Below the pieces are notes generated by a model. That model was given only the letters and a program-made list of their open reading frames with translations. It ran no database searches and had not been told where the DNA came from. 64,000 bases of DNA, taken from Pavona decussata. Its lineage: Eukaryota. Positions 23,607 to 32,404 of the stretch are shown here, piece after piece. Position numbers and translations under genes: made by a program. The stretch is taken from assembly GCA_977016875.1 (NCBI GenBank), contig CDRNST010000233.1:4402001-4466000 (forward strand), read 5' to 3'. How positions within the stretch are numbered: the stretch's first letter is position 1; every line of letters begins with the position of its first letter.

Positions 23607-25635
23607 TTAATTTGTCCAAATGTCAACTTCCACTCAAACATGTAGAATCAAGTGTGCCCTCAAACTTGAACCTGGTGGAATACATAATACCAGTAAAACC
23701 CAGCTCATTTTCTTTGGTCTTGACATAGTTCAAGTGTTTCAGTTTTTCTAAATGGACCTTTATTTTTAAGATCTTAATTATTTATTTTCTGACGTCCATT
23801 GTTGGTTTTTGATCAGGGTTCATTGCAATGTCAGGAGCAACAGAGAGTAGCGCAGGTAGCTGTCCAAAAGATGCCTCCAGTGCCCCACCTCCTCTCAGTC
23901 TTAAACTGTCAAAGTTGAGCGATTTACCAAAAAAGTGCGAACGTTGGAGTGATGTTCAGCTGCCGGTAGACATTCTGTTGTTGACAGTGGAGGACTGTGA
24001 GTTCCTGGCATGTTTTGCATACATGAAAAACTCCTTTAAGTTATCGCAAGGACCTTGGTTATGTGTACTTTGGAAAAACGGGTGCTGATGAAGATGAGCC
24101 CTTGAAGATTGCTCTGATGAAGTGTAATGAAGGTTCTTCTGGTCCAGGTGGATCTCAAACTGTTGTCAAAAATGCAGTTATGCAGCTGAGACCCAAGGCC
24201 ATTTATTCTGTCGGCTGCTGCAGTGGTCTGAATAAAGATAAAACCCAGCTAGGTGATGTGGTGGTATCCTCTAAACTCGCATTTGAAGCCTTCAGAACTC
24301 CAGTGGACAGAAATATTGGAAACCTTGTAAGACATGCAGCTGATGGCTGGGAGCCACCAATAGAAAGCCCAGAAGTTCTGAAACCAACTGTGCACTGTGA
24401 TGGTGAGATTATGAGTGGAACAGACCAGAACACTGCTAAACAGCTACAAGAGGTGCGCCCAAATAATGCAGTTGCAGTCGAAATGGAAGGGAAAGGTGAG
24501 ATTTAAAGTACTGATTAGTTCTTTAACCAGAATTCAAAGTACATTATTTTGTAATGGTGTAAATTATGTCAAATGCCATAAAGTGAATTAGGTAAGCCTG
24601 GTAGGTCCTCCTTGTAAATTGGATGGAGGTGATAAGGAGATGGGAACTGGGAATGAAGGCAAGGGTGTTCTATTATGCCCAGAACTGTGTTTCGTGAACA
24701 GCAACTTGTTGCACCAAATTGCTGCCAGAAAATAATAATGACATTCTTAGCAAAAAGGTACTCACTGCATTACCTTTTGCTTGCATATTAAACAAAGCTT
24801 GATGCATGTTCAAGGTCAGCACAGGTACTTTATGCATACCCCCCTCTCCTCCCCTGCCAAGGGCTGAATAGCATTGTGCCATCCCAGTTATGTCAGGCTA
24901 AATTTTAGACTTAAAGGGGAGGTATCTCAGGGATTTGATGTCATTTCAGAACCCACAAATGTTTGTCTGTCAGCAGAAACAAAAAAATAATTTAGTTAAA
25001 ATAGTTAAAAACGATCTCTAGCTAAAATGATTAAAACTACAAGCTTTCGAGTGCCCAAATTGTAGTCTTCGACGGGTAAAATGAAAGATAAGAAAGCGAT
25101 GGGAAAAATTTAAGCAAAAAGCGTGAATGCGAAATAATAAAAAATGTAAATAATTACACTAATTACTTGACCTTGCCAAGTTTGTTTTAAATTATCACCC
25201 TGGTGCAATAAAACTATCGATTAGTTCCTCTACCCTGGCCAGAGACAGAGTAGGTTAGAATGGATTGAAACTTAAAAAATGTAGGTAATTACCATTTTTC
25301 AAGTTGTCGCATTTTTGTTTCCAAGATGCACTAGAACAGATTACAAGTTGTTCCTTTCAAGAGTTGAGTTGATATCGTTCCTCTCTTTGTTCTAGAACTA
25401 TTTTGTAGCTGATCATTTTTAACAAAAGTGGTCAAAACCCTATGATGGGTTTAAGGGGGGTTGGCTTAATGGGTGGTGGCTCTTAATCAGAGGTATTAGC
25501 CCAGTTTATAGTTATGCTTGAAAAACAGATCTTAGCAAGGAGTATTGAAATCACCATGAAGAAAATTGGGGTATGAATTTCACATATTTACTTCCAACTC
25601 TTTACCTCTGCGACATATTTATAACAAACTCATAA

Positions 25636-25780
25636 TATGACCAGCTTCCATTTGACTTGATAGCTCAGTTGGTAGAGCACTGCGCTATTATCACATAGGT
25701 CATGGGTTGAATTCCATTCAAGCCTTTTTTTTTTCAGACTTTCTTTTCTTAGCTGCTAAAGTGGCATACATCACTGCACT
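25636..25780 (+). mobile_element. tRNA-derived SINE relic in the NLR intron (paralogous copy at ~56290-56410)
   Basis: A-box TAGCTCAGTTGGTAGAGCA and degenerate B-box GGTTGAATTCC followed by a T-run and non-tRNA body. No acceptor stem. Confidence 0.7.
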
Positions 25781-28272
25781 TGTCTCTCGTTTATTAATCA
25801 TGCGTTTAGTGTTCTTTATATTAATTCCTTTCCAGGTATATTTGTAGCAGCCCATGACCTGAAAATTGAATGGGTGATCGTTAAAGGTGTTTGTGATTTT
25901 GTTGGTGCTAGCAGAACCCCAGATGAGTCGTGGAAATCTTTTGCTTGTGTGATGGCAACCTCTGTTGTTTTTAACATGCTAAACGACCCCATTGTTTTTG
26001 AAGACTGGCCTCACTACCAAGGTATGTAACAATCCTACTGTAGTAAATTCTTGCAACATTTCTGTTTAGGGGACTGGTATATGTTGGTATGGACAGGAGG
26101 CAAGATTTATCACACAGACATATTGACCCCGTTCCGAGATACTCAGATTACCTTTCTAATAGCTAGATACAAGATCACTACTGGCATCACTTTATTATTT
26201 TTCCAAGCGTTTACAAAAATACTACTGGCTTTGGAGAATTAACCAATTAAAGAGAATAATTACCAAGCCATTCATGGAGAACTAGAGTTGCTCTCCAGAT
26301 GTACACTTCGTTGTCGATGATTTTCATTCAGTTTTCTGATCCCCCAACTTTGGTCTCCTTTTCCATTCGTCTTGTTTCGTTGGCGAGATTTGTTTTTCCT
26401 TAGTTTTTTAATCAATCCAAAGAAGGAAACCCTTTCAAGTCGAAAGGCGAGTAATGAAAGAATTCTGTTGGCTTTTGAGAACAGTTTGTGTATCGTTGCT
26501 TGATATTCGGAATAAATTGTGAAAAAAAGCGTTTTCTTTAGCAAAAGGTCAACTTTCGTAACGCTAAAAAAAACTAATGCATGTTGTTTTCGAAGGGCAA
26601 ATACGTTGTTAAAAATGTAAAAAGGCCAGCCAGGATTTTCGGCAAACCAACAGCGGGTCGTATCTCGGAGAATAATTTTCCATTCATACAAAAATTGTCG
26701 GCCGTTTGATTTTTCTCCTAAAGAATCTAAAGAGATCAAACTGTGTTATCTTGCACCAATTTACCTTTATGGGGGAATGAAGAAAACTAAAATTTTAAAG
26801 ACACTTGTTTTTGTGAGGCGGTCTCTAGTGGTCATTTGGGCTTTCTGAGCTTACTGCCTTAAAAATCTTTCTCCAAAATGGACACTACAGAGATTGCACT
26901 CCTTCTTCTCTTCTTCTTCTCCTTCTGACGACTCTTAAATGAGTCTGGTTAAAACATGGAAAAAAAGGTTCACGTAAAAGGTCATTTTGAGTTTTCCCAT
27001 TCCAAAGTTAACCCCTCCCCTCCAGCCCCATCAAAAATACTGCCAGCACCCTTTTTCAATTTCCAATTCGAAGAACTCATAGTGGAAACTCGATCAACAG
27101 GATGTAATACTTTGTACGTCGGCGCATAGTTCATTGAGGGATTAGTTACGGAACTTTCCTATCTTAAAAGTTGATAACAATGGCGCTGCAGTTTATGTTG
27201 GAAGAACAATTCTTTGTTTTAACGTGCACACTACAGCTGAATATCTTAACAGGATCTTTTCTATTGGTTAGTTGCTTCGACACATTTTAAAATCTGATGT
27301 AGTTTGTGCATAAAACGACTAAGAGGCCCGTCTGGCTTCATAACCATTACCTTTTTGTAACTATGGTCGGCGAAACCTTTGCATATGCTCTGAGACAGAC
27401 CCCCCTAAAATCCACATTTCATACGTTAATTTTTACACTTGCTACATGTTGACTTCCTATGACTCGACTCCATGAAAATGGACTTTGGAAAAGTCTTGTT
27501 AATTTGAAACTCTTTGTTTTAAGTCATTACGTTTTCATTAACGTTTCTAAGTAATGTTAAGGCCTTATTCCATCAATATTGTACGTTATTGTGTAACTGA
27601 CGATGGCTGTAGTGACAGCCGAATCTTGTCTTCCAAAATAACAAGTGTTACGGTGTGTCTCCTTAAAATTATGGAAAGATTTCCGCAACCCATACATTAA
27701 TTTTACATGCACCACTGTCACACTATTCCTCTTCCAAATAATGGCAAGCATAAATAGAGTTTGAGTCGCAAAACTTATACATGATTAATGTATAGGACTG
27801 TGTGGCAATCTTTGCGAAACTTTTACTTGTCTCCTGCTATAAAAACCTATGTGAGATCGCTTTAGAACGGCAGGAGAATCAGCATCAGCAACTAACCAGC
27901 CAAAAAAAACAGGTCCACTCGCTTATTGCTCTTCAAAAAATCTAAAGTTTTGTGACATTTCTGGCACAGGTGAAACATCGAACCAGGAGCAATCAACCAG
28001 TGGCCAAAAACAAAAGTTATCTTGTTCAGATTCGGAGGATTCTAAACGAAGAAAAGAGTCAGGTAAGTTTGATTTCTAAGAACAATATTAGGATAACGAT
28101 TTTAGTGGGATAAAATATATATTATAGAATACAGAGTGGGGTTTAGGTATTTTTGTTTTATTTTCTTAAATTAGCTTTTCCATTGCGGAGTTAATGATTT
28201 CTAATGTTGTCATTAAAATAACCGAATTCACATCAAATCAAATATCTTTTTTTTTTCTTTTATTCACTGCAG

Positions 28273-31048: not shown

Positions 31049-31374
31049 TATTATTAAGGCGCTTTTACTTGTGCACAAGGGAATTTTTTTTGAAACTTGT
31101 CTCGCAATTTTGTTGCGCCACAAGTTGCACGGATCGTTGCCTAGTGTAACATGCCTTTAAATGACCTTGTCTCGCAATTTTTTTGTTGCCGCAATCGTCG
31201 CGAAAAGTAGAAGTCGGTTCTACTTCATGCAACGGTGACTGCAACAAAAACGTTGCGAGGCATGTTCATTACAGGGCATGTTACACTAGGCAACGATCCA
31301 TGCAACTTGTGTTACAATGGCGAAACGAAATTGCGAGACAAGTTGCAAGAAAAATTGCCTAGTGTGACAGCGCC
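31049..31374. mobile_element. MITE (Harbinger-like), internally palindromic
   Basis: GGCGCTTTTAC...GTGTGACAGCGCC termini; internal AACTTGTCTCGCAATTT / AAATTGCGAGACAAGTT inverted pair. Confidence 0.5.
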
Positions 31375-32404
31375 TGTAAGAGAGGAATGCCAAATCACCA
31401 CACGACAAACAGACGTTATTTTTCTTGAAAACGAACGTTGTTCGAGCGATGAAGATAAGTTCTTGGAACTGTACTTGCAAGAAACAGAAAAGTACATCAT
31501 CGTCAGGTCCGGTGAAGGTAATTTTGGAGAGATTAAACAATTTTTATGGAATTTACCTTAACCTGCGATCAGGCGTTCTTCTTTTTTTTTTTTTTTCGGG
31601 GGAGCGCAAAAGTGTGGCAGCGCGAGACTCGGCGGTCGGTGGAACCTGGTCGCAGGTTAAATTTATCGCGGTTCGGCCACGGACCCTTGTCCCTGAAGCC
31701 ATCGGCCTTTTGTCTTCAATTGATTAGCATGAATCGGCTACAGATACTGCATTTTGTGTATTGTCTAAAGCTGTATCAAAGTTGGTACACTTTGAATCAA
31801 AGCGATGGGCATCAAAATCTTAACTTCAAGTGTCTAGATTGATTTGAGGGAATCAGATTTTTTTTTCTCAGAGAAATCCCGATGTTTTTCCTGGCTATAT
31901 AAAGTGTCGGGGGAAGCTTATTTCCGCTTATTTTTTCTTGGATTTAATTCAATCTAACATCAAGGCTCGAGTACAGTAATAATAAAATAGGCTGCTTGCT
32001 ATACAGTACTTATGGAGACTGAAAATCTTGTGATCGAAGGCGTAGTCCCACGGGAATTTTTTTCTGGAATCTTGGTTTCTTAGTCGAGGTTGTTCACTTC
32101 AGTAACGAGTTTTCAATTCATCTTTCATCAGTTAAGAAAATCTCTGAAAGGAATTCTATTTCTTGTTGTTCGTTGTTGTTGTTGTTGTTGTTGTTGTTTT
32201 AATATTTCTTGTTGTTTCTCTGTTCTTTTTGAAGCAAATTGAACGATAAGTAGTTTTGACTTTCGTTGATGTAGTGGATGGTGTTTAACATTGGTTTCTG
32301 ATTTGTGGCAGGATGATGAAGGGAACCCGAAACCCGAACATAAATGGCCGTCAGAGAATTACTGGAAAAGGAAGGAAAGGAAGCTCCATTTCACCGTCAG
32401 GTGA

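Follow-up and report, generated by a model that had tools for sequence, protein, structure and literature searches.

A tandem-array coral NLR with a nucleosidase-fold domain in the place of a death-fold domain: two units of a PNP-NACHT-LRR array in Pavona decussata

A 64,000-nt stretch of the Pavona decussata genome (contig CDRNST010000233.1, here C233, 4402001-4466000; this whole stretch is referred to as the window) raises the question of whether exons encoding a nucleosidase domain (PNP_UDP_1), a NACHT ATPase and leucine-rich repeats (LRRs) make up one NLR-type immune receptor gene, and whether the nucleosidase is the effector of that receptor. The genome is that of a scleractinian coral (602 Mb, G+C content of approximately 39%), and the closest named proteins are those of the stony corals Oculina patagonica, Porites, Acropora, Montipora, Pocillopora and Stylophora. 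The window carries two of the seven units of a tandem PNP-NACHT-LRR array located at 4.42-4.61 Mb of C233, and the membership of this locus in a PNP-NACHT-LRR gene family is very likely. In unit 1, a nucleosidase-fold domain is spliced to a NACHT-LRR core, in the position where a death-fold domain is otherwise found. Taken as a whole, the locus is best explained as one unit of a tandem array of coral NLR genes with an MTAN-fold nucleosidase as the proposed effector, a reading to which we assign a probability of about 0.6. The gene type itself has already been described in corals since 2013, and the present locus adds a further member to it rather than a new concept.

Unit 1 consists of five exons on the forward strand. 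Exon 1 (23828..24495) encodes an N-terminal extension and most of the nucleosidase (PNP_UDP_1/MTAN-like) domain and is followed by a GT donor at 24496, and exon 2 (25836..26021) supplies the last strand and helix of this domain together with the KGVCD motif, the Asp of which aligns with MTAN Asp197. Exon 3 (27970..28062) is a linker of 31 codons, rich in Ser, Asp and Glu, with a basic KRRK patch. Exon 4 (28273..30650) comprises 792 open codons, which encode the NACHT, the helical and winged-helix domains, an alpha/beta insert, a disordered linker and five to six RI-type LRRs. Exon 5 (32312..32404) encodes a short C-terminal tail (DDEGNPKPEHKW...) that ends with a TGA at 32402-32404. All introns are bounded by GT..AG and their phases are 1, 1, 1 and 0. 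The preliminary description of this DNA had listed the motifs LLTVEDCE, GCCSG, LGDVVVS, EMEG and KGVCD, all of which are present, and it had proposed five exons with compatible phases; all five exons and their GT/AG sites were found, but the phases fit for the design of the gene only, the frame of exon 1 being broken (see below).

That these exons form one gene is indicated by three independent lines of evidence: spliced contigs from run X1, continuous homologues in other corals (P0018 and P0020) and the pairing of the exons throughout the genome. In the RNA-like run X1, contigs skip exactly from 24495 to 25836, from 26021 to 27970 and from 28062 to 28273, the three junctions that the preliminary description had marked for verification, in each case with GT..AG; these contigs cover the exons and leave the unique intron stretches uncovered. 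A metatranscriptome run (X15) covers exons 1 and 4 with little unique intron sequence, and the run on record as RNA that contains the stretch is labelled 'coral metagenome'. P0018 is an open reading frame (ORF) of 1143 residues on an intronless JGI contig of 4955 nt from a related coral, with untranslated ends present, and is arranged in the order nucleosidase, linker, NACHT, LRR and tail, matching window exons 1, 2, 4 and 5 in order. P0020, the NCBI model LOC144652487 of Oculina, is likewise collinear with the window exons, the collinearity of both homologues extending over all five exons, and further continuous collinear homologues were found among Porites, Acropora and Pocillopora proteins. 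The junction between exons 4 and 5 follows from collinearity with P0018 only, and not from reads. Genome-wide, the nucleosidase exon has at least 141 matches, 136 of which are without stops, and at least 36 NACHT-exon matches (among 59 listed) are preceded on the same strand, at a distance of 2-22 kb, by a nucleosidase exon. Such pairs, tallied manually from two match tables, include six of the seven units of the array. The preliminary placement of a nucleosidase and a NACHT-LRR core in the death-fold arrangement is borne out; this order is met at no fewer than 36 places in the genome and also in other stony corals.

Two further observations concern the segments that flank the core. Conserved basic patches occur in the linker of exon 3 and in those of P0018 and P0020 (KRRK; KRK...KRSR in P0018), and a linker of this type could be a nuclear-localisation-like or cleavage-prone segment. 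At the 3' end, within 32312-32560 and after the stop of exon 5, another frame encodes SGETEDEQEPG followed by 36-bp acidic repeats; SGETEDE and these repeats are similar to the acidic stretches with which P0018 and P0020 end, and the tail of unit 1 may be frame-shifted relative to its homologues.

The receptor core belongs to the animal type. The NACHT of exon 4, for which the preliminary description had suggested a PF05729 search, was matched by this model with 67.9 bits (cut-off 26.7), and the Walker A (GRPGIGKT), Walker B (LLILDGYDE), TTR and winged-helix (FIHKSVQEFLAA) motifs are invariant or nearly so in 73 homologues. A structural model of exon 4 (predicted local distance difference test, pLDDT, of 77.8) was aligned by Foldseek end to end with NLRC4 (E 6e-26), then with NLRP3 and NOD2, and also with NAIP; the alignments to NLRC4, NLRP3 and NOD2 extend over approximately 820-1085 columns, gaps included. 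No LRR was reported by Pfam in exon 4, nor in a search of its last 130 residues, but the model contains five to six strand-helix (beta/alpha) repeats of approximately 28 residues each at residues 646-792, with a pLDDT of 86-95. The LRRs claimed in the preliminary description thus stand in the predicted structure, where they appear to be real but minimal, and not in Pfam. No Pfam match was obtained for an N-terminal death-fold domain (CARD, PYD or DED), the N-terminus being occupied by the nucleosidase domain.

Between the units of the array, the ratio of nonsynonymous to synonymous substitution rates (dN/dS) is mostly 0.15-0.6 in the NACHT part and exceeds 1 in nearly all pairs in the last 240 codons. 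Changes private to single units are distributed accordingly, with 62 nonsynonymous (N) to 16 synonymous (S) changes in the C-terminal part versus 23:18 in the NACHT (Fisher p 0.01), counts that are small and come from unit pairs that are not independent. The pattern is nonetheless the one familiar from NLR sensors, in which a conserved engine is joined to a fast-changing repeat end.

The exons of the window were searched singly; for the nucleosidase domain as a whole, the tests were carried out on residues 1-300 of P0018 (P0018:1-300), a proxy that is 68% identical to exon 1 of unit 2, and on an alignment of 40 coral domains. With PF01048 the exon 1 pieces of the window, in which the domain is cut short by an intron, reach 22.9 (24063-24494) and 20.0 bits against a cut-off of 25.1; the PF01048 search proposed beforehand thus stays just below threshold on these pieces, and among continuous family members 37 of 40 are matched at E<=1e-3 (best 2e-17). 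The model of P0018:1-300 (pLDDT 77.5) shows the three-layer alpha/beta fold of nucleoside phosphorylases and nucleosidases, and its top 47 Foldseek matches are MTA/SAH nucleosidases and the related futalosine hydrolase, with E values around 1e-13 and template modelling (TM) scores, by target, of 0.63-0.78. The best MTAN matches have an E of 3e-14, a TM score of 0.72-0.78 and approximately 15% identity, and the family profile finds MTAN chains with an E of 3e-10.

In the profile alignment, KG[VI]xD falls on RAISD of MTAN, which contains the catalytic Asp197, and E-x-E-G falls on Glu172-Met173-Glu174 (E-M-E-A). Both window units read GVCD and EMEG, and have thus kept the catalytic Asp and the ribose-binding Glu (Glu174). 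The Asp of GVCD corresponds to the residue that is changed in Cap17 D472A and DtcC D353A, mutations that abolish function. Since the array keeps both residues, its units are among the family members most likely to be active enzymes. On NF004079, the MtnN equivalog model with a cut-off of 169 bits, exon 1 of unit 2 scores 16.9 and P0018:1-300 scores 24.2 bits, and the best E among the 40 coral domains is 6e-15; all of these lie far under the cut-off and outside the MtnN equivalog. Such scores, together with the fusion to an immune receptor and the presence of more than 140 copies, fit a housekeeping role poorly. In nucleosidase exon 1, pairwise dN/dS is 0.3-0.7 in most pairs and 1.00 between the near-identical units 2 and 3, which differ by very few changes.

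Receptors of this kind have been known for some time. PNP_UDP-NLRs were reported in Acropora (A. digitifera) in 2013 (Hamada et al. 2013, as cited in PMC4986451), and Rousset et al. (2023, bioRxiv 10.1101/2023.01.24.525353) placed hundreds of coral PNP-NLRs in the Cap17 ATP-nucleosidase clade. The same authors proposed that these proteins cleave ATP upon pathogen sensing, and demonstrated ATP/dATP nucleosidase activity for the head of a fungal NLR and for a sponge Death-domain protein. As both the architecture and the mechanism had been published for coral PNP-NLRs, the novelty attributed to the locus in the preliminary description was overstated. More than 100 coral homologues were found among the NCBI proteins of ten coral species, many of them with PF01048, PF05729 and LRR. 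Elsewhere among corals, the fusion partners of this domain also include caspase, Death, GBP, Roc-COR, OTU, glycosyltransferase and DZIP3-HEPN.

The array shares with the described coral PNP_UDP-NLRs the N-terminal PNP_UDP_1-type domain, the central NACHT, the C-terminal repeats and the large lineage-specific tandem expansions, and P0018:1-300 is 42-62% identical to the N-terminal domain of the named coral proteins. It differs in that its subfamily lies at the edge of Pfam detection, so that the PNP domain is missing from the annotation of close homologues, Oculina LOC144652487 among them, and in having a very short LRR of five to six repeats. With Cap17 of CBASS and DtcC of Detocs the coral head has in common an MTAN-like fold in the (for corals proposed) role of an immune effector, coupled to a sensor module, as well as a catalytic Asp approximately 35 residues before the end of the domain; it would however be activated by the fused NACHT-LRR instead of by a cyclic nucleotide or phosphotransfer, and its sequence similarity to these proteins is no stronger than to MTAN. 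The fungal PNP_UDP-NACHT NLRs (Hyaloscypha NLRN, the head of which has been shown to cleave ATP, and Podospora Pa_2_8180) also combine an enzyme head, a NACHT and repeats, but their repeats are ANK, TPR or WD40 and not LRR, whereas the coral core is of the animal NLRC4/NLRP/NOD2 type. MtnN, the MTA/SAH nucleosidase, is the best structural match (TM 0.72-0.78), with conserved Glu-Met-Glu and Ser/Cys-Asp motifs; in contrast to it, the coral head is only about 15% identical, carries an additional conserved N-terminal extension of 45 residues, is fused to an NLR and occurs in more than 140 copies per genome. With vertebrate NLRC4, NLRP3 and NOD2 the coral gene shares the core of NACHT, helical domain 1 (HD1), winged-helix domain (WHD), HD2 and LRR, the Walker A and B motifs and an FxHxxxQEFLAA motif, but it has an enzyme head in place of CARD or PYD and far fewer LRRs.

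In the working model, the five exons would be spliced into a protein of approximately 1140 residues, composed of the nucleosidase, an acidic/basic linker, the NACHT ATPase with its helical and winged-helix domains, a short LRR and a tail, in which an MTAN-fold nucleosidase of the PNP_UDP_1 superfamily would serve as N-terminal effector instead of CARD, PYD or Death. The LRR-bearing C-terminal part would sense a ligand, upon which the NACHT module would exchange nucleotide and oligomerise, and the nucleosidase domains clustered in this way would switch on. The bond that they then cleave would be the N-glycosidic one in adenine nucleotides, with ATP/dATP as the most likely substrates, as for Cap17/DtcC and the sponge and fungal homologues, and the cell would be starved or killed without caspases. 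Cleavage of ATP/dATP triggered by oligomerisation fits the retained catalytic Asp and Glu, and is purely inferred here.

Several observations weigh against this reading, the first of which concern the transcripts and the two window units themselves. In exon 4, the variants found in X1 and X15 carry the letters of sister units 3 and 4 (13/13); the spliced contigs show splicing for the array, and not the expression of unit 1 itself. Unit 1 lacks two A's at 24037/24038 in the alignment with unit 2 (CTCCTTT--AAG versus CTCCTTCAAAAG), a site at which all five sister units (units 3-7) have four A's. Because of this 2-bp gap, the ATG frame stops at 24086-24088; its phase does not match exon 2, which is met only by the frame after the gap. 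The preliminary description had treated exon 1 as one open frame and missed this break, and in its assembled form unit 1 could not yield a full-length protein. An 'AA' insertion behind 24037 in the DNA-like runs X16 and X18 was considered as an intact allele of unit 1 and rejected, all ten variant letters being those of sister unit 6. The sister units are 95-97% identical to unit 1, and hence pass a 95% filter and cross-map, so that reads leave the frame break unsettled.

Unit 2 has an intact nucleosidase exon 1 (55013..55676, forward strand), with 221 codons and one base inside an open frame of 224 codons, followed on the same strand by exon 2 (56473..56658), in which KGVCDF is kept, and by the linker exon 3 (58983..59075). 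Its exon 4 is a stump (59288..59436, forward strand) of 41 codons homologous to unit 1, which then runs into a minisatellite and stops at 59434-59436. The minisatellite (59413..60658) stands in place of the NACHT-LRR exon and consists of approximately 52 copies of 24 bp (consensus TCTGGACTGGCTGGACTGGATTAG, 90% matches); on the minus strand it gives rise to a 474-codon open frame of NPVQPVQT repeats. A search with P0018 found no NACHT-like sequence from the stump to window-equivalent position 72000, and the genome-wide NACHT-exon search has none among its listed matches between that position and the next unit. Unit 2 is a nucleosidase-only stump without NACHT, and neither window copy reads through intact as assembled. 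With unit 1 frame-broken and unit 2 lacking the NACHT-LRR, it is in the sister units, just beyond the window, that the intact design is found.

These facts bear on two alternative explanations of the locus. It might be argued that the nucleosidase exons belong to one gene and the NACHT exon to an adjacent one, given that the six-frame ORF track yields separate pieces and that unit 2 is an example of a unit with the nucleosidase alone; this is scarcely credible against contigs that join the exons at exact GT/AG sites, a continuous ORF of 1143 residues on the intronless contig of a related coral, and the same order, strand and spacing at no fewer than 36 loci. A more serious possibility, although one we regard as rather doubtful, is that the 2-bp loss is real and unit 1 is a recently dead gene, which can be translated from its ATG for 86 codons only; unit 2 being truncated too, the window would in that case be without a working PNP-NACHT-LRR gene and would hold only relatives of working sister units. 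The absence of two A's present in unit 2 and in units 3-7, the acidic tail of the homologues that lies out of frame after exon 5, and the lack of any contig over the break with unit 1's own letters all speak for such a loss. Contigs, however, drop rare variants, so the missing letters prove nothing, and a slip of 2 bp in an A run can equally be an assembly error. Exon 4 of unit 1, moreover, is open over its 792 codons, and its private changes (20 N:12 S) resemble those of its siblings and are no more relaxed, from which it follows that the break, unless it is an assembly slip in the A run, arose very recently, and that any death of the gene would itself be very recent.

The remaining points against the proposed nucleosidase-effector NLR concern the head and its activity. 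The effector model of Cap17 in PADLOC matches 36 of the 40 coral domains and PDC-M60C 38 of 40, while the NCBIfam MTAN model and Pfam match 37 of 40 each, with E-values similar to those of the Cap17 models. E. coli MtnN itself reaches 54.6 bits with the Cap17 effector model, more than the two coral domains compared with it, P0018 (29.6) and P0020 (39.4), and these libraries were rejected as a means of telling Cap17 from MTAN, as all of them match approximately 36-38 of the 40 domains and MtnN itself fits the Cap17 model. The nearest plasmid-borne bacterial relatives found by tblastn are defence-style fusions and not housekeeping genes, namely multi-domain PNP proteins of Calothrix and Nostoc and an HNH-PNP of Agrobacterium. 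In a tree of 46 rows (the 40 coral domains, the Calothrix PNP-SAVED protein, the Agrobacterium HNH-PNP, the Calothrix and Nostoc plasmid proteins, and E. coli MtnN and DeoD), all coral domains group together in a single clade (86/82), irrespective of the domain to which each is fused; MtnN is placed with the bacterial fusions on long branches, and no nearest relative of the coral clade is resolved. The assignment of the coral domains to the Cap17 clade is that of the published tree (Rousset et al. 2023). As a separate observation, the Calothrix protein (Calothrix sp. NIES-4105 plasmid3, AP018293.1 18111-19736) is a PNP-SAVED fusion of 541 residues with 116.6 bits on the Cap17 effector model and matches to SAVED models; it adjoins a second PNP protein (tblastn match), and the two have the look of a pair of nucleosidase effectors of the CBASS type in a cyanobacterium.

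The catalytic Asp is kept in only 16 of the 40 sampled coral nucleosidase domains; the other 24 show His, Ser, Arg, Gly, Asn, Cys or Tyr at this position, and the Glu of E-x-E-G is absent as well from some Porites members. Within the genome of P. decussata, the array of the window and a related group read C/S-D (GV[CS]D), and a large group of paralogues on C172, C132 and C230 reads GVAS. The family as a whole may accordingly not depend on catalysis, and the loss of the Asp in most of the sampled coral domains, which is a slightly new finding, tempers any blanket claim that all coral PNP-NLRs cleave ATP. A homodimer prediction for the nucleosidase domain gave a score of 0.00, which is evidence neither way.

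Whether the head is an adenine-nucleotide nucleosidase triggered by the NLR is a question on which we lean, by a little, towards an active enzyme, an activity that for the coral members is drawn from their homologues. The demonstrated cases, in which ATP/dATP is cleaved to adenine and ribose-5'-triphosphate, are bacterial, sponge and fungal members. It seems unlikely, without being far-fetched, that the head has a different substrate (MTA/SAH, AMP, NAD-derived or signalling nucleotides) or serves mainly as a non-catalytic module for oligomerisation or as an adaptor. The nearest solved folds and the sequence matches in the PDB are all MTA/SAH nucleosidases, the Asp is replaced in the 24 domains mentioned above and in some Porites the Glu is lacking too, and the profile scores and small tree obtained here give no placement in the Cap17 clade. 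The array of the window nevertheless retains both Asp and Glu, 24 versus 169 bits is far under the MTAN equivalog cut-off, more than 140 copies fused to immune-type partners misfit a housekeeping role, and the published tree puts the coral NLR domains in the Cap17 clade, of which the sponge and fungal members prefer ATP. More speculatively, and with a low probability, coral nucleosidase-NLRs could be split into an Asp-keeping, enzyme-competent kind (this array; 16/40) and an Asp-less kind (24/40), the latter comprising most Acropora and Montipora members and many of those of Porites and Oculina. If such a split were true, many members would be pseudo-enzymes that serve as adaptors or decoys or pair with the active members, nucleosidase-only stumps like unit 2 could be free regulators, and labour within the family would be divided in a sensor/helper-like way, with a nucleosidase domain as its basis.

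Besides the two units, the window contains an intact C2H2 zinc-finger gene of 714 codons with approximately 20 fingers (5758-7902, minus strand; zf-H2C2_2, E 6e-103), a reverse-transcriptase fragment (13972-14754, minus strand; RVT_1, E 1e-27) that adjoins a run of 164 N at 13476-13639, and an ORF (41679-42164, plus strand) that matches a Mutator-like transposase family just over the cut-off (PF20700, E 8e-7). Directly upstream of unit 1, 23006-23610 is an inverted duplicate of 15699-16303 (605 bp, 97.9% identical), and the last intron of unit 1 includes an imperfect palindrome of 290 bp (31074-31364); both are probably transposon remains.

For corals, nucleosidase-headed NLRs would mean that an immune decision can be executed in an animal cell independently of caspases, and they would link animal NLRs to the effectors of bacterial abortive infection, an idea that has already been published. 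Within this family, the locus described here represents a well-resolved, expressed and recently duplicated array in which the catalytic residues are kept, and its natural variants, namely one unit with a broken frame, one without NACHT and sister units whose LRR end changes fast, may serve as test material.

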